Source: Chlorokybus atmophyticus
Lineage: Eukaryota > Plantae > Mesostigma and Chlorokybus algae
Direction of reading: 5' to 3'
DNA: 64,000 bases
Assembly: GCA_009103225.1 (NCBI GenBank)
Contig: RHPI01002568.1
Coordinates: 534,098 to 598,097, forward strand
Of this stretch, positions 18,162 to 26,612 are shown piece after piece; the stretch's first letter is position 1, and each line of letters begins with the position of its first letter. The notes under the pieces are model-generated. The model did not search any database. It saw nothing but the letters and a program-made list of their open reading frames with translations, and was not told the DNA's origin. A program made the translations under genes and the position numbers.

Positions 18162-21050
18162 AGCTGTGAGGAACATGTTCATGCATGTGTACGTGCACAC
18201 GCAATGCAAGGCAAGCATGTGCATACCATAAATCTCCGTCGCCAACTCGCTAGGCAATGCTTCCATTTTGTTAAGTGGTAAGCAGCCATATCAGCAATTG
18301 ATGGTGACAGTGAACTTTATGATATATTTTGCCTATTCTGCTCGCAACATAATGTGTGGCCAACTTGTCATGAGATCTGCTGGCCTTATCCGACCTCAGA
18401 AGTGGCGTTGAGGACCTGCGCTGCACGGGACTGTCAGCCGATGACAATCAGCTTGCCTGCTTGACAAGCAGTGCTTGTGCATCACTTATGCCGCAAAGAA
18501 CACGATTCGTTCATGACTCATGAAGCGACGCATTGAGACAGCTCGACGCCTTGGTTGACAGGCACCGCCACTGGACAAATTTCTTGATGAACGTATCGTC
18601 TCAACTTCAACTGAGACCTGAAGTTAAAGGCTACCGTGCCCAGAACAGAAAAAACAGACAAAATTAATACGTATATTCACGACAATCTTATTTAGTTTTA
18701 GTTTTAATTGTAGTTTTGTCTTGGATTTAATCTCTTGTGATAATTTTGCTTCCTATGCCGCCATGGCCTGTTTCAACTATTTCGTTACGCGCGAAGCGCG
18801 CGTAACTAACACATTTTGCACATTTTAGCCCTACTTCAGTGCAGTGTAGTAACCAGACGTCATATATCCTTCGCGTCGTATGGGAGCAGTTCGTTATGTT
18901 GATCTGCTCCATAACATAAACTACGTCTAAAAGCGCCTTTTTATTATATTTCTGCGGAAAGTTGTGCAACTACAACTCAACCTGATGACACGACATGCTT
19001 AACCCTCTCAGATCGGTCGCTCTACAGAACAGCTGTAACTCTGAAATGACATGTATAAACCGTCTTTACTTACACTGCATAAGTAAGGAAGGAGTAACTT
19101 TGGCGCCGCAATTTCGTCTATCGCGCACGCCGTCCGCCGCAGCTACCGGCCATCTGACAACGTCTAGTCGGGTATCGCCTGCGATAGCGACGCTTGGTGA
19201 TTGTCATGAGGGACAAGCTGTCTCGGAGGATCACCCTTGACTTGGGTACGGCGCCTGTAGATCGGCACAATCGGCGGTACTACACCGCCTTTGCTGTCAA
19301 TGTGGCGAGCCTCTTCGGTCGCTTGAAAAAATGCTGCAGGATGCAAGTTGCATTATGCAACTCCTACCACATGACGCCTTACCAAGTGATTCCGTCAGCA
19401 AGTGCTTGAAACTCAACGCGATGCATACCAACAGCGCATATGGACGGCTCCGGTATTGAGTTCTAGACGGGACTTGGTCGTCCGCGCGCTTACATTGTAC
19501 AATGGCAAAGTACGCTGCTCAGCGAGATAATAGATGTCTTACGTTAAAAATCTGGCTTAGGGACGATGCGCGCGCTGAGCCGCCGCGATAGGGCAGCGTG
19601 GCCACGCCGAACGATACCGACAAGCTATACTACAGGCGCGCGGCAACTTTGAAGAAGTCCTTTGCGGCGCGCGGCAGATACGGATACAGATGCACACGTT
19701 GCGTGCGTCGCTGTGCATCGGTGCATCAGTGCATCGGTCACAGCGGTGTGACTCAGTCCAACCCTTTTAGCCTCAAAGAGCCACACGCAGCCAGCGAACA
19801 TTGCTCATCAGTGCGGTGAATAAGTCAGACATGAAGCCCTACTCAACACCGACACAGTGCAGACCAACAACTGGAAGCACTGCAACCCAGTACGAACTTA
19901 TGCATCATGCACCGGATATTGCATGCAAACTTCTATGCCTAGGGGCCTATCCTGAAGCGTGTGTGGTGCACGTACAAGCCTAGCGCTCTATACGAAGCCC
20001 ACCCGTCCTTACTCATGATAGACTTTGTCTTCTTGTGCACGTGTGTGGGCAGATAGCTGTGGCTGGCACACAGAGGTTTAGGCATGTCGTGACCGAGCAA
20101 AAAGGGTAGCGTGAGAGGGCAAGAGAGTGCGTGAGAAGGTCTCATGCAAGGGTAAACTTGGCCTTGACTTGCATTATGCACCATGGTTCATGCAACTTGC
20201 ATGATGCAAGCCACCTTCACCTAGGCAGGCAGGCTTCAATCATATCGGCTCCAGTTTGCTACTGAACTTTACAGCGTGCCACTTAGCTAGTCGGCCAACG
20301 CCACCTCTGCTGCCGCCGCCGCCACTGCCGCCGCCGCAGGCAGCTTGGTGCGCAGGTACTTCCTCGTGTTGTCGTCATCAACTCCATCATTGTGGATAGG
20401 CGCTATCATAATTGAGTTAGAACGATAGGCCGCGTAAGGCGTGTCACTATTCTCTCCCAGTCTTCGTGTCTCTCCCTAATCTCAACCACTTCGACTTTCA
20501 GGCGCTTGAGAAGCCTGCAAGCCTGCAAGTAGGTACTTATTGACGAGACTTAACACCCCCTAAGCATAGACAAGACCTATCTCTAGCAAGGGTAGCTTGG
20601 CTAGTAAGCTTCAGCAACTTGACAGCTCTTAAGCACGGAAGCAAGACAGAGAGACTCAACGTCATTCTCTCTTCCCCATACCTCGTGAGGGGTTGCAAGC
20701 AAGACGTCCTCTTGCAGACATGCAAGTGCGGTGAGTGAACAGACACTCAGAGCCAGCATTGTTTCTTGACTGCCTATCATCTGATGCATGTACCGCATAC
20801 CATGCATCTGTGCTCATTTGGTACCTTGTTCGTCCGTGCTTGTCAACTTCATGCATGATCTCTCCCTGTTCATCTTGCTGTGGGATGATTTGCCTAGATG
20901 GTATGAGTTGCAAACAAGCAGTTCTCCCTTTGTTGTGCAGAGAGTTATCTTAAGCCTTCCCAGGCTGCCAACGAGTTCAGTGAGTAGGTATCAGTAAGCT
21001 ATCTGCCACACCAGTTTTTCTGTGTACAAACACCCACGTAGCCACCCAAC

Positions 21051-24000
21051 ATGGCGCCTCCTCGCCTGCTCTCCTTCCTATTGGTTCTCTGCTGCTGCTC
21101 TCTCCTACACAGCGCGTCTGCACTAGTGGTGAGTTGTGCATATAGCTGCCATATGGTGGTTCCATTGAAGCAGGTCGTGATGAGGGTATGTCGCTGCAGG
21201 TGACCAATGTGACGGTGAATCTCACAAGTGATCCCACGGTGCCGTATGCGAGCGACGGCTTCACGTGTCTCTCAATCCATCTCGATGACGTGCAGATGTA
21301 TGCCGGCCTCGGCCTCAACCTCGCTGCTGGTCCTGTAGGTAAGAGCAAGAAGAAGTACAAGGTGGTGATGATGATGGAGATGGGGAGAGAGTGTGTGAGT
21401 ATGTGTGTGCTTGCGCCTATGTGTCTGTGTGTGCGCATGAGCATACGTGTGTGCATGGGCGTGTGCCACGATACGCTCTGATGTGTACAGCACTGATGTA
21501 TATCTTGCATGCTTGCAGATCCTGTTTTCTATCAAGCGTTGAAGAATCTGATTGATCTCGGTAATGGTTTGACCATGCGCGTCAACAGCGGCTTCGGCGT
21601 CACCTTTGATGAGACTCAAGCCAAGACGAATTCCAGCGACTTCAACACAGCCTCGCTGGAGTTTATCTCTGTAAGAGAGACTGCATAGTGTCCTTGTGAT
21701 GGCGTCTTTGCATAGGTGGCACATGACCATGCAGCCTTACCTCCATGTGTGTATGTGCGGCTCAGTTGATGGGTAGACTCTATCGGGAGCTCGGCATGAA
21801 GATCATTCCCGTGCTCGGGTGGGCCAGCGACAATGACCCCAAAACCCTCAACACAACCTTCCTCAAGGTACTCACGTGTGTATGTGTGTAGCATGCGCAC
21901 TCACAACAACACCATCACCATCATCAACACCAACCTGAAAATCTGCTTGCAGTATCTCACGCGCGCGACGGGTACTGCTGCGATCCGTGGCGTGGAGCAG
22001 GCGAATGAGCCGGACGCGCTCAAGCCCGCGATGGTGATCACCAACGGCGGCCGCCGCAACATCACCGCGTCGCAGATACCCTATGTGGCCAACGCTGTGG
22101 GGGACTACCCAAACACACCATGGTGAGTGTGTGCGGTGTTGTTGTTGCTACAGATGCATCAGCTGTATCAGTATCAGCTGATACTGATACAGCTGTATCA
22201 GCTGTATTAGTTCTTGCATTCATACTTATTCGTGGAATAGGTGTATGAATGTCTGATACTCGTTCATGCAGGGGGTATTATGGCTTTGAGAAGGTGTATG
22301 AGTACTTTGCTCGAGAGTGGGGCAAGCAGATTGTGCGGGACCGAACCGGACTCAGGACAGACCCATGGTAAGCAACAGTTTATTTATGTACATACTGTCA
22401 GTTGTCCGCTGTTTGGCCTCTCATCGCAAACACACATATGTGTCACACTCACCCGTGGCTTCTTTCTTGTGCAGGATTGGGGGAGCAATCACAGTAAGCT
22501 CCTTCATCACGTTTGTTATCGTTGCTCCGCGTCCTATGCCTGTTTAACTTTGTTAGTGCTGTTGGCACAAAACTGACTGTGGCCTTTGCTCGTGCAGTAC
22601 ACGTTTAAATTCCCATGGCTGCCAAACATCACGGTACGATAAGAAAATCACTTGCGTGTGCGCGTACGCATTTGACTGTATGTGCGCCCATGCACAAACT
22701 GGTCCAGCAAATCAGCCAAATAAACCAACCACAATTCCCATCCCATCAGGATTTCTTCCAGAAGTACATGAACGAGTCCTCCCCCTTTTACAGCACGAAT
22801 GCCTTCTCCTGGCACCATTACAGTTTCCCGAACTGCGTGGCTCAGAACCAGGGGTACACCGTTCCCGGTGTGCTCAACTCGACGGTGTTCCCGTCCTCAC
22901 TCATCCCCTTCCTGAAACTGGCGTCGTCGCTCAAGAAGGAGGTTATGCTCACGGAACATGCGTCGAGCTCGTGCGGAGGCGTGGCCGGCGTCGCAGACAC
23001 TTACGCGTAAGCTTACAACTTGTGTCACACGCATATGTGTGCATGCGCAGGTAACATAACACGACAATGGTGTTCTTGCCTTGCTGATGAGTTGATGTGA
23101 CACAGGGCGACGCTGCACGAGATTCAGTACATGATGCAGACGGCTGCGGCGGGTTTCACCGCGGTGTGCATGACGACCAGCACGGCATCATACACGCCAG
23201 TACGTGTTGCTTGCGAATATGATAACTTGCACACGCATGCACACATATGCGTGTATGCAGTTGCAGACACGTGTTCTTACATGTATGTGCTATTCGCAGT
23301 TTGAACCCCTCGGCAGCGTCACCTACGATGCTGATGGTTATGGTTACCGCCAGAAGTGGTGGCTGAAGAACACCTATTACTGTGAGCACAACACCACAAC
23401 TACCACCGCCAACATGAAATACCTACCACACCCACTCACTATGTCATTCTCATGCAGCTATGCTCGTTGTTGCTGAGGCTTTGGGCGAATCTTCAAAGGT
23501 GTCTCGCATCAACATCACCGGCACAGACCCGATAGTCCTCTCTGCCTTCATGGTGTATCGTCCCGACAACTCTTTCCGCATCGTCCTCATCAACAGAGAG
23601 TTGACAACCACACCAGCCTACAAGCGCACGCCTTTCCAAGTGGCTTTGCAGATGCCTGTGACCAAAGGTTCCGCAACATTCAAGCGGCTGCGATGCGACA
23701 ACGTGTACAGGAAGTCCACCATAACGTATGCAGGACAGACCTATGATGATACGACGGACGGGTGTCCGGTTGGGGACCTGACAGTGGAGACGGTTAGATC
23801 GACGCAGTATGACATCGGCACGTACACGTATGCGATCAACATGGTGCAGGCGGATGTCGTCGTGATGTTCTTTGGTACGCGTACTGTGTGTGTGTGTGCA
23901 TGTGTGCTTGTACGCGCGCATGTGTGGGTATGTGTATGCGTCTACATGCTTCTCGCGCGCATGTGCGCGTGCATGTGGGCTTCTGAGTGTGCATGCACGT

Positions 24001-24511
24001 ACGTGTGCGTGTGCGCATGTGTCCAGCTTTGACACCTATGCTGCCATGTCTGTCTGATAACCAACCAATCTCACTCTTCCTCCTTTCTCAGGCACGCCAC
24101 CACGCAACCCTCAGCCCTGTCCCGCCCTCCAGCCTCCTCCTCCCCACTCTCCCCCTCCTCCCCCTCCTCCCTCCCCCTCTCCTCCTCCTCCCTCTCCTCC
24201 CCCACCTCCTCCCTCACCCCCGCCGCCGCCGCCGCCCGTGTCGACGGTCAGGCTGCAGGTGCTGTCGTTCCCCATCGATCACGGGATCGTCGCCATCAAC
24301 GGGACATACTACTTTGCAACTGCGGCGGTGGCAACCAAACCGGGATACAGAGCACAGGTGGGTGATGCGCAGTTTGTGGACGAGTTTGGGTGGCTTTTTG
24401 CTCTCAACATGGTTGCTTGCAGATACGCGCACGCACACAAAGACAACAGCAACATGCACATATGCGCATGCACGTGTGCATGCGCAGACACACCCACACC
24501 CACACGCACAC

Positions 24512-24579
<68 letters not shown>

Positions 24580-25616
24580 CCTCTCAGGTCTCTGCGACAT
24601 CTTCCTACGACTCTGGCATCCCCTACAAGCTCGTTGGTTGGAGTGATTCCGGCGGTTTGCTCCACTCCTTTGTCGTCCCGTTCCAGGCAGACTACCCCGT
24701 CACCGCCTACTTCTCCATCAACACGCCATCGGGTGGGTCTTACGGCTCCCTCCCGGCCCCGTACAAATTCGTGCAGATCAGCAACTACAACGTCAGAGGA
24801 GTACTTGGCAGTAAGTCCACGTGATGGTCGATATGTTGTGTATCAGTGTCAGTACCATCTCACTGGTACTCACCGAGTGTGTGTGTGTGGCTTTGCAGTG
24901 GGAGTGTGGTACAACTCCAACTCGGCCGTGACAACTATGACTGCGGCCGGTCCGGGCGTGGGTGGTGTTGAGGATGGTTGCGGCTTCGTGTACACGCTGC
25001 AAAATGTGCCGCAGGCAGCCACGCTGCAGCTCACCGTCCGCATTGTCTCCATCAAGTGCCAAGACAGCACCGAGTACGCATGCATTGCATCACTTGCGTG
25101 GCTTGTCTCTTCACAAACGTTTGCTACACACTTGCACAGTTGATTGCATTCTGCAGGCAGCTAGCAGTAACTTGTTACCTAAAATGCGCATCTCTGCACG
25201 TCAAACCAGTTCAACACTCACACCTTCTCTATCGCAGCTGTCGCGCGGGTGTCATGGTTCGTCGTACCGGCTACCCCGTCAAGACCAACCCGCCCTCGGT
25301 GTTTGCTTACGTCACCTCCGGTGGTCGCGTGGGTCTAACCTACCGCACTTCCGCCACCGGCAACAGCGTGGACATCACCTCTTCCTCCACCACCCCACTC
25401 GTGTTCCCCGCGTGGGTTCGCGTGTCGATCTCCACGACGACTGTGACAGTTTCAGCTTCTCGCGATGGCAGAACCTGGGTGGCAGACTATAACATCAATG
25501 CGGATATAGCCTTCGGTGTTGCGGGGATGACGGCAGTCCCTGTTGGGGTGGCAGCAACAAGTCAGGCTGTTCAGCACATCTCGCAGGTGGCTTTCAGCAA
25601 CTTCAGCGGGCATTAG
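21051..25616 (+). CDS. Secreted GH79 (beta-glucuronidase/heparanase family) + extensin-like Ser-Pro linker + bacterial-type repeat + ConA/DUF1349-like domain
   Basis: Signal peptide MAPPRLLSFLLVLCCCSLLHSASA. Acid/base motif EQANEPD, FSWHHY, nucleophile region MLTEHASSSCGGVAGVADTYAA, GH79 C-domain IVLINR..TITYAGQTYDDTTDG. SPPPP linker at 24091..24237. About 17 exons with consistent phases. Confidence 0.85.
22160..22195. repeat. Perfect 36-bp palindrome inside a GH79 intron
   Basis: CAGCTGTATCAGTATCAG|CTGATACTGATACAGCTG equals its own reverse complement. Confidence 0.95.
24523..24576. repeat. (CA)n microsatellite in a GH79 intron
   Basis: Pure CA run. Confidence 0.9.
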
Positions 25617-26612
25617 AAAAATGAGTGGGAGTGGTAGATGTGGAGCACAGTGTAAGTGCGCGTGTGTGTATGTCTGTCATGTGTAGATGTTTGTAGGTGT
25701 AGAGGCGCATTTGCCGGTTTTGGCGTGCTAGTTTGCGGAGGTTGTTTGTTTGTGTGTAGATGTGCTCGCGTTAGTTGGAGAGTAGCAGAAACGAAAGTAG
25801 GGTTATGCCTGAATTGTATTGCTTACCAGTTTGCTGCCGTTGTCACATATGTTGTGCACGTGTCGTGATGTGTTTGTGTTGTGCCGCTTCCTCCTCCACT
25901 CGCTTGCCTAGCTATCAATGCACTGGTCAACTCATGCGCTTTGCAGCTGTTTGCTTAGCCAAGTCAATCCTGCAGGTGTTAACCATGCCCATTGCATGAG
26001 TCATACGTTTGAGCTGACCAACCAGTCTGAGCGTAGTACAGCATGGTACACACGCACAATGTTCGGTTGTCTCTGCTGATCTCTTGATCTTTTAGCACAC
26101 GGTCACACAGTTTTGAAAGGTATGTGGCGAAACTACTAAGGAATGCACCCACCACGACTTGAACATGGATAATTATTGGCAGTACAGCATAGGGTATACA
26201 AAGGAACAATTACATCTGATCTGCTACCCAATTCAACTTCTATTGGTCAGATAGCTATAAAAGGCTGGTACTTTGACACTGCTCAATTCTTCAAGATATT
26301 ATTGGATTCGGAAACTCCAAAAGCGGATTCTGTGCAGCTGCTGCCAGTGGCATAACAGTACTCCCAAGCCTCGGTAATTGCAAACTCCTGTGCACAGCTG
26401 TGAAGTTTGTCATCTCCGAGGTCTGCACGATGAGCAACAGGATAGGTCCCATCAGTGTGTGTGCACAACTGAATTCAGCCCTGAACCATACTGGAAATAA
26501 GCTCTCCACCTGGCCAAGAGGGGGCATGGTGGAACATGAACAACACTGGCATGCGGTTTGTACCACACCCTGTGCCGAAGACCATCGTCTGCAACTTGAA
26601 GCCCAGGCGAGG

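Follow-up and report, generated by a model that had tools for sequence, protein, structure and literature searches.

The closest described relatives of the enzyme presented here are two microbial glycoside hydrolases of family 79 (GH79), the exo-beta-glucuronidase AcGlcA79A of Acidobacterium capsulatum (PDB 3vny/5g0m) and the Fusarium glucuronidase FoBGlcA (7dfq), which is active on arabinogalactan proteins (AGPs). Both are built of a catalytic barrel and a C-terminal beta-sandwich, and both stop after the sandwich. The GH79 enzymes of land plants (AtGUS-type, heparanase-like, PF03662) belong to the same CAZy family and have a presumed role as wall or AGP glucuronidases. ConA-like (concanavalin A-like) appendages on modular glycosidases are common in bacteria, and those of the DUF1349 type are thought to target or hold bacterial glycosidases, lyases and dehydrogenases on glycans. 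The gene analysed here lies on the + strand, at 21051-25616, of a 64,000-nucleotide stretch of the genome of Chlorokybus atmophyticus (contig RHPI01002568.1, hereafter the window, whose positions are used throughout). It has the same barrel and C-terminal beta-sandwich as AcGlcA79A and FoBGlcA, to which it is ~25-34% identical over parts only; it differs from them in adding a Ser-Pro(n) linker and two further modules (module 1 and module 2), in being split by 15 introns and in having a streptophyte alga as host. We read it as a single nuclear Chlorokybus gene for a secreted and N-glycosylated enzyme of the wall or mucilage, 894 residues long, with the architecture, the mechanism and the history proposed below, and we give this reading as a whole a probability of about 0.6.

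The frame begins at ATG 21051, preceded by an in-frame TAG four codons upstream, and ends at the stop TAG 25614-25616. An earlier note on this DNA, made from the letters alone, had given exactly these ends. Exons were placed by eye on window 21000-25760, from its DNA and its translation in three frames. Joined together, 16 exons give a frame of 2685 nt (894 amino acids) without internal stop. All 15 introns have GT..CAG ends; many coding blocks are short and the introns are (CA)n-rich.

Exon 1 (21051-21128, 26 codons) supplies the start codon and a signal peptide, with a hydrophobic core and a cleavage-like site between ..SASA and LV. The GH79 catalytic (beta/alpha)8 region is encoded by exons 2-10 (21200-23199), as delimited by GT..CAG introns and profile matches: exons 2-5 at 21200-21338, 21519-21670, 21766-21867 and 21953-22122, exons 6-8 at 22272-22367, 22475-22493 and 22598-22633, and exons 9-10 at 22750-23006 and 23106-23199. 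Exons 11-12 (23300-23381 and 23458-23874) encode the end of the barrel and the GH79C beta-sandwich, recognised by Pfam PF16862. Beyond intron 12 (23875-24091 in the 894-residue model), the first part of exon 13 (24092-24237) encodes a Pro/Ser-rich, extensin-like linker of 49 residues, identified from its sequence and from a paralogue. The second part (24238-24357) encodes the N-terminal half of module 1 (VRLQVLSFP..VAING..), whose C-terminal half (..YKLVGWSDSGG..VTAYF..TPSGGSYG) follows after intron 13 (24358-24587) in the first part of exon 14 (24588-24746); both halves were placed by alignment to the paralogue. Module 2 is encoded by the end of exon 14 (24747-24810), exon 15 (24899-25073) and exon 16 (25238-25616). 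Its start, ..SLPAPY.., lies inside exon 14, so that module 2 contains two introns. All these features are on the + strand.

The motifs quoted in the earlier note were recovered on this strand in the order given there: NEPD, TEHASSSCGG, SP7/SP4/SP6/SP7 and WSDSGG...VTAYF, then the block GVGGVEDGCGFVYT...RAGVMVR...SRDGRTW...AFSN. Its description of one secreted multi-module gene (GH79, SPn linker, two C-terminal modules) agrees with the single frame and with a collinear paralogue. It had also described the modules as intronised; spliceosomal introns do interrupt them, and the modules share the codon bias of the host: the G+C content at third codon positions (GC3) amounts to 0.71 for the GH79 part and to 0.75 and 0.70 for modules 1 and 2, respectively, for an intron G+C content of 0.49. 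The composition of the tail is indistinguishable from that of the remainder of the gene. The 894-residue model contains 11 N-x-S/T sequons, and no further paralogous module was found elsewhere in the 64-kb window.

Some details of the locus can be noted in passing. The 19-nt microexon (22475-22493) encodes WIGGAIT in the GH79 barrel; it is kept by the public model of the gene, and its counterpart in the paralogue reads WVGGVIT. An (AC)45 microsatellite occupies 24488-24577, within intron 13, and TG/CA repeats are abundant in several further introns. The pentamer TGTAA, a candidate poly(A) signal of chlorophyte style, occurs at 25651-25655, 35 nt past the stop, and nowhere else in the first downstream kilobase.

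Exon 12 alone matches PF16862 (Glyco_hydro_79C) with 37.6 bits (E 4.3e-9; cut-off 27), close to the 36.6 bits of the paralogue over profile positions 1-102 of 103. A profile built from the window-gene protein, the paralogue and one fungal GH79 (alignment A3) was compared to the PDB, where it found AcGlcA79A (E 4.7e-18), the Burkholderia GH79 BpHep (3.6e-11), human heparanase (7e-8) and FoBGlcA (8.5e-8). These similarities go well beyond what chance would give. In the profile alignment NEPD faces GNEPD and LTEH faces LTETN, i.e. the two catalytic Glu of AcGlcA79A; the nucleophile Glu is also aligned to GETSS of human heparanase. The correspondence with AcGlcA79A and FoBGlcA thus covers the NEP acid/base, the TE nucleophile and the Tyr of the ..YTP.. 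motif that follows the nucleophile. Both catalytic Glu are invariant across A3. The predicted acid/base is residue 176 of the model (22007-22009) and the predicted nucleophile residue 333 (22954-22956). By these alignments the protein is a retaining GH79 of clan GH-A endowed with both catalytic glutamates, and its activity is predicted.

The other detectable kin of the catalytic part are a fungal GH79 (34% identity over 118 residues) and GH79 genes on Granulicella and Paraburkholderia replicons (23-26% identity). Pfam gave no match to PF03662, the N-terminal domain of the plant and heparanase enzymes, and there were no plant proteins among the detected relatives. Since the C-domain is of PF16862 type and the kin are limited to the paralogue and to fungal and bacterial GH79s, the enzyme is assigned, from its sequence, to the microbial PF16862 branch of GH79, outside the land-plant GUS branch. 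The window gene is thus no orthologue of the land-plant GH79s. The earlier note had taken the host enzyme to be a plant-type wall glucuronidase, a view that the PF16862-type catalytic part and the lack of a PF03662 match do not support. It had further proposed a bacterial tail grafted onto a plant glucuronidase. The relatives of the tail are indeed bacterial, as described below, but the catalytic domain is itself of microbial GH79 type, and on this assignment the image of a plant enzyme carrying a foreign tail does not apply to the fusion. For the same reason the contrast that the note drew with land-plant GH79s is weakened, because it spans different subfamilies.

The linker (residues 548-596) contains 34 Pro and 5 Ser in 49 residues, arranged as SP7, SP4, SP6 and SP7, and is encoded by a CCT/CCC repeat at 24133-24221. 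With repeated Ser-Pro(3+) motifs downstream of a signal peptide, it has the hallmarks of an extensin-like hydroxyproline-rich glycoprotein (HRGP). In secreted proteins of the green lineage SPn motifs are hydroxylated and glycosylated. A Pro-rich linker of different sequence occupies the matching position in the paralogue.

The joining of these parts in one product has to be weighed against the public gene model. An exhaustive HMMER search of 1.84 billion representative sequences with exon 16 (125 aa) returned a protein of 723 residues identical at 125 of 125 positions. This protein, P0001, bears the source name jgi/Chlat1/8572/Chrsp82S07957 and comes from the EukProt set of Chlorokybus atmophyticus (the sequenced strain has since been renamed C. 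melkonianii CCAC 0220; PMC11096116). Exons 2-12, 15 and 16, microexon included, are identical in P0001. It begins at an internal Met (21188) and consequently lacks the signal-peptide exon; and it carries a single, frame-keeping intron at 23793-24686 on the + strand (GTTAGA..TTCCAG). Compared with the 894-residue model, this intron drops 149 codons, residues 521-669, which cover the end of GH79C, the linker and most of module 1.

The paralogue, Chrsp158S02305 (P0010), has 1150 residues and is 34% identical to the window gene. It consists of a signal peptide ending in ..SASAQNV, the counterpart of exon 1, followed by GH79, GH79C (profile 1-102 of 103), the Pro-rich linker and two successive units of module 1 plus a ConA-like module. 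These tandem units occupy residues ~566-870 and ~866-1150. By tblastn, P0010 is collinear with the window through the end of exon 12, then over the linker plus the N-terminal half of module 1 (24157-24363, E 4e-10), then over exons 14-16. The last ~27 codons of exon 12, dropped in P0001, align to the end of the P0010 GH79C domain, and a protein alignment of the module 1 pieces puts the exon 13/14 junction at a point where P0010 reads straight through. Because P0010 is collinear across the stretch skipped by P0001, we take the 894-residue model as the better one, and on this comparison it is very probably superior to the public splice.

The converse, that the 723-residue protein is the true product, the linker and first half of module 1 being intronic and GH79 running straight into a truncated module 1 and the ConA-like module, or that both forms exist as isoforms, appears distinctly unlikely. 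The interval 23793-24686 does have GT..AG ends and preserves the frame, it was the choice of the public annotation, and an open frame proves nothing by itself in the C/T-rich DNA of the linker, where all three frames are open. But the public model truncates GH79C (Pfam profile 1-82 of 103, against 1-102 in the paralogue) and has no signal peptide, and the 149 codons that it discards align to the paralogue in order, with a coding-like GC3 of 0.75. The differences in splice and start shown by Chrsp82S07957 are therefore probably an annotation error, and possibly an isoform. A split into two genes, the first with GH79 and its end near 23874, the second a separate lectin-like gene further downstream, is still far less credible: the frame meets a stop behind GH79C only if intron 12 is retained, at the cost of ~50 junk codons, neither an ATG nor a signal peptide for the tail occurs ahead of the linker, and the public models of both the window gene and the paralogue join the GH79 part to the tail.

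Module 2, of ~190 residues, is the part of the tail for which relatives could be identified. Its ..SLPAPY.. start corresponds to the LP.GW start of bacterial modules. The language-model features of exon 16 score 0.95-0.96 to DUF1349 clusters. At E <= 1e-3 the HMMER search with exon 16 gave 30 matches only. Their origin was checked for 22, which are the gene itself, the paralogue and 20 proteins from metagenome-assembled genomes (MAGs) or metagenomes; no eukaryote was seen among these 20 looked-up members of the 28 non-Chlorokybus matches. The six matches scanned by Pfam are genuine DUF1349 proteins, with scores up to 91 bits. By phmmer, P0003-P0006 are reached at E 2.7e-12 to 2e-09 and themselves score 38-91 bits on PF07081 (DUF1349). 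The join of exons 15 and 16 was searched through P0001, and BLASTP with the whole module 2 gave a best E of 6e-15 over 172 residues. A word-based protein search with exon 16 found nothing in the length band of 69-219 aa, and tblastn of module 2 against plasmids gave no match.

The relatives checked by Pfam are large proteins in which DUF1349 is often repeated and stands beside LamG, SdrD_B, heparinase II/III, LTD and Ig domains. The named sources among the matches looked up are MAGs of Phycisphaerales, Sedimentisphaerales, Verrucomicrobia and Pseudomonadota, the remainder being unlabelled metagenome proteins. As an example, a Verrucomicrobia MAG (L002, 2453-5995; JAFLEG010000007.1) encodes a protein of 1181 aa with Ig, Big_5, a DUF1349-like module and three lamin-tail domains. 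Module 2 aligns end to end with 26 bacterial segments (alignment A1), and the aligned set shares the motif series DIWG..D.F.FVY / AKAGVM.R / P.WVRL / S.DG..W / GLAVTSH / FDNV. The first ConA-like copy of P0010 keeps the DIWG motif, which the second copy and the window gene have both lost.

An AlphaFold2 model of module 2 computed on A1 reached a mean predicted local distance difference test (pLDDT) score of 79.5 and a predicted template modelling (pTM) score of 0.82. Foldseek placed 3o12, a yeast protein, as its top match (E 4.6e-8). Structural Z scores (VIA) were 18.0 for 3mep, which is ECA2234 of Pectobacterium, and 17.8 for 3o12, over ~170 residues; these two are the solved DUF1349 proteins, and they have the same fold as the model. 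The C-terminal domains of GH43 enzymes (16.7) and CBM66 (15.8) came after. Among predicted structures, the nearest ESM-Atlas shapes are bacterial DUF1349 modules (TM 0.71-0.79, root-mean-square deviation 2.2-2.8 Å), mostly from Acidobacteriota and Verrucomicrobiota and carried by PLD-like, Ig-like, GSDH/PQQ-dehydrogenase, melibiase and alginate-lyase proteins. Language-model features, HMMER relatives, modelled fold and shape matches thus agree, and from the sequence and the model we class module 2 as a DUF1349-type ConA-like beta-sandwich. The earlier note had recognised a module of this kind, and its nearest relatives are, as the note implied, accessory modules of bacterial multidomain proteins, largely from soil phyla.

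Several likenesses and differences qualify this assignment. The DUF1349 modules of Planctomycetota, Verrucomicrobiota and Acidobacteriota have the same motif series and are likewise appendages of carbohydrate-active or sugar-oxidising enzymes. In the Chlorokybus protein, by contrast, module 2 is preceded by module 1, not seen in the bacterial DUF1349 proteins examined, and by an extensin-like rod; it is moreover interrupted by two introns and has DIWG replaced. The GH43 C-terminal ConA-like domain (PF17851) and CBM66 provide the next-best structures (Z 15.5-16.7), and PF17851 also gives a weak match in the first ConA-like copy of the paralogue. The GH43 domain, however, completes the active site of its enzyme, whereas in the Chlorokybus protein a long flexible linker keeps the module well away from the catalytic domain.

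For the history of module 2 we built a maximum-likelihood tree of A1, which is unrooted and comprises no DUF1349 sequence from fungi or other eukaryotes. The three Chlorokybus copies form one group (support 95/92) on very long branches, which fits a single origin followed by duplication. They are only 30-32% identical to one another, no closer than to bacteria. As far as sequences can tell, the distribution of the relatives favours a bacterial source of module 2, and we put the chance of its horizontal transfer slightly above even. The earlier note had inferred horizontal acquisition, with which the distribution of relatives is consistent; the tree, however, is unrooted, and a yeast DUF1349 fold fits as well as a bacterial one.

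Another history has the tail not acquired horizontally at all: Chlorokybus would have retained in the DUF1349-type module a fast-evolving eukaryotic domain of old standing, as in the REE1-like proteins of yeast, and its bacterial best matches would reflect database bias and long branches. The near-equal fit of the yeast and bacterial structures (Z 17.8 vs 18.0) speaks for it, as do the low identity and very long branches of the Chlorokybus copies, the introns inside module 2 and the lack of a compositional trace of transfer. Yet the 1.84 billion representatives include eukaryotic proteomes and yielded no eukaryote other than Chlorokybus in the 22 of 30 matches checked for origin, and the motif set, together with the habit of decorating secreted enzymes, is that of the bacterial multidomain subgroup. 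We consider such retention possible but rather improbable.

The microbial character of the catalytic domain raises a further alternative, in which the whole gene came from a microbial donor as a unit with its accessory modules, only the linker and the introns being algal. The catalytic domain is of fungal or bacterial PF16862 type and its detectable kin are fungal and soil-bacterial GH79s. In addition, GH79 is listed among the streptophyte wall-degrading families with phylogenies suggestive of horizontal gene transfer (Feng et al. 2024; PMC11096116). However, the 28 module 2 relatives from outside Chlorokybus all lack a GH79 domain, the partner domains in them being LamG, SdrD_B, heparinase II/III, LTD and Ig; and the catalytic domain reaches no more than 23-34% identity to any microbial sequence, over parts of its length. 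Transfer as a unit therefore seems unlikely, more so than vertical retention of the tail. Nonetheless the whole gene, beyond the tail alone, may be foreign or ancient.

Module 1 (~110 residues, between the linker and module 2) is conserved in the three Chlorokybus units. Its exon 14 part is 33-35% identical to both P0010 copies, and its exon 13 part aligns to both as well. The queries were the separate exons of the window gene and the copies of the paralogue. Pfam gave no module 1 match with the window exons at E <=1 nor with either paralogue copy at E <=10, NCBIfam and PHROGs gave none even at E 10, and a profile of the module 1 copies found nothing in the PDB. A word-based protein search with the module 1 region of the paralogue returned the paralogue itself only, and tblastn against plasmids produced noise only. 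An AlphaFold2 model on a four-row alignment was unusable (pLDDT 38). All language-model neighbours of exon 14 belong to PF18998/PF09479 clusters, with a score of 0.82 and 138 shared features, below trust levels; a score of 0.82, reached by a third of shuffled proteins, is a lead only.

The earlier note had seen in module 1 a divergent InlB B-repeat (PF18998, Flg_new_2). The size is similar, and the G-[YF]-x-[FL]-x-G-W-S core and terminal V-T-A-x-F resemble what we take to be the PF18998 pattern. Module 1 differs from that family in having no HMM (hidden Markov model) match at any threshold tried. With the database searches negative, the pLDDT at 38 and the score of 0.82 as lone pointer, the identification was not borne out, and from the sequence it stands as a reasonable, unconfirmed guess. 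We describe module 1 as a putative beta-rich module that has so far been met in the Chlorokybus GH79 family alone and always stands ahead of the ConA-like module.

Three other resemblances of exon 14 were examined. The stretch LVGWSDSGGLLHSFVVPFQADYP (24630-24700) recalls the repeated blade motif LVxWQDSGGNWHxGFxLPxPSxY of CV39L, a bacterial propeller lectin with seven blades, and phmmer of exon 14 against the PDB returned CV39L (6gxs) with a whole-sequence E of 1.4e-3 and a best single stretch at 0.05, as well as InlB at E 0.11, through its GW region and not through its B-repeat. Kinship with the CV39L propeller or with InlB GW was rejected, as the copies in the paralogue do not have the motif and it takes more than one blade to build a propeller; the CV39L-like stretch is probably a chance short motif. 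A metagenome match of exon 14 (L003) was likewise rejected: it is a chance YGSLPAPY inside an unrelated HD-type protein.

Taken together, these comparisons lead us to propose the following working of the enzyme. The GH79 part would act as an exo-beta-glucuronidase-like enzyme on uronic-acid-bearing glycans of the wall or mucilage, of AGP or glucuronan type. The linker, hydroxylated and O-glycosylated, would form a stiff spacer setting the reach between docking and catalytic site. By analogy with the bacterial appendages, the cassette of module 1 and module 2 would be non-catalytic and would target the enzyme to glycans or hold it there. As to history, the DUF1349-type module would have entered the Chlorokybus lineage from bacteria of Planctomycetota/Verrucomicrobiota/Acidobacteriota type, then gained introns and host codon bias and been duplicated; the GH79 family would then have diverged to the ~34% identity now separating the paralogues.

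A number of points weigh against this proposal. Pfam DUF1349 matches stay below the gathering threshold of 32.4 bits, with 15.4 bits (E 0.015) for exon 16, 13.8 bits (E 0.048) for the whole module and 11.9-21.8 bits for the paralogue copies. The bacterial DIWG motif is degenerate in the window gene (GVGG). To module 1 neither family nor fold can be assigned. Introns 12 and 13 were placed by homology and frame alone, and the public annotation spliced otherwise. The direction of transfer is read from an unrooted tree with long branches, and DUF1349 is present in fungi too (3o12). The substrate and the binding function are predictions drawn from sequence only.

A broader version of the proposal can also be formulated, which we regard as doubtful. 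In it the pair of module 1 and the DUF1349-type module is a soil-bacterial cassette, of PVC (Planctomycetota-Verrucomicrobiota-Chlamydiota)/Acidobacteriota type, that spread through the Chlorokybus secretome on HRGP rods, in several GH79 paralogues, and module 1 is a new small domain family. If true, the earliest-diverging streptophyte lineage living on land surfaces would possess a glycan-targeting device domesticated from bacteria.

At the level of the sequence the gene is real and is better modelled here than in the public annotation, which is probably wrong in three places: the signal peptide is missing, the end of GH79C is cut, and the linker and module 1 are omitted. The domain combination is new; a modular glycosidase with a ConA-like appendage was known already. 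Bacterial ancestry of the lectin-like module is plausible, and unproven, from the comparisons made. The family offers a GH79 with a natural putative targeting tail for biochemical study. Chlorokybus represents a streptophyte branch that is among the deepest, and it shares its subaerial habitat with soil bacteria. If the proposed history is true, wall or mucilage enzymes made of microbial-type modules and plant-type HRGP rods would be concrete evidence of transfer from soil bacteria, and such transfer would have shaped cell-wall remodelling before land plants arose.

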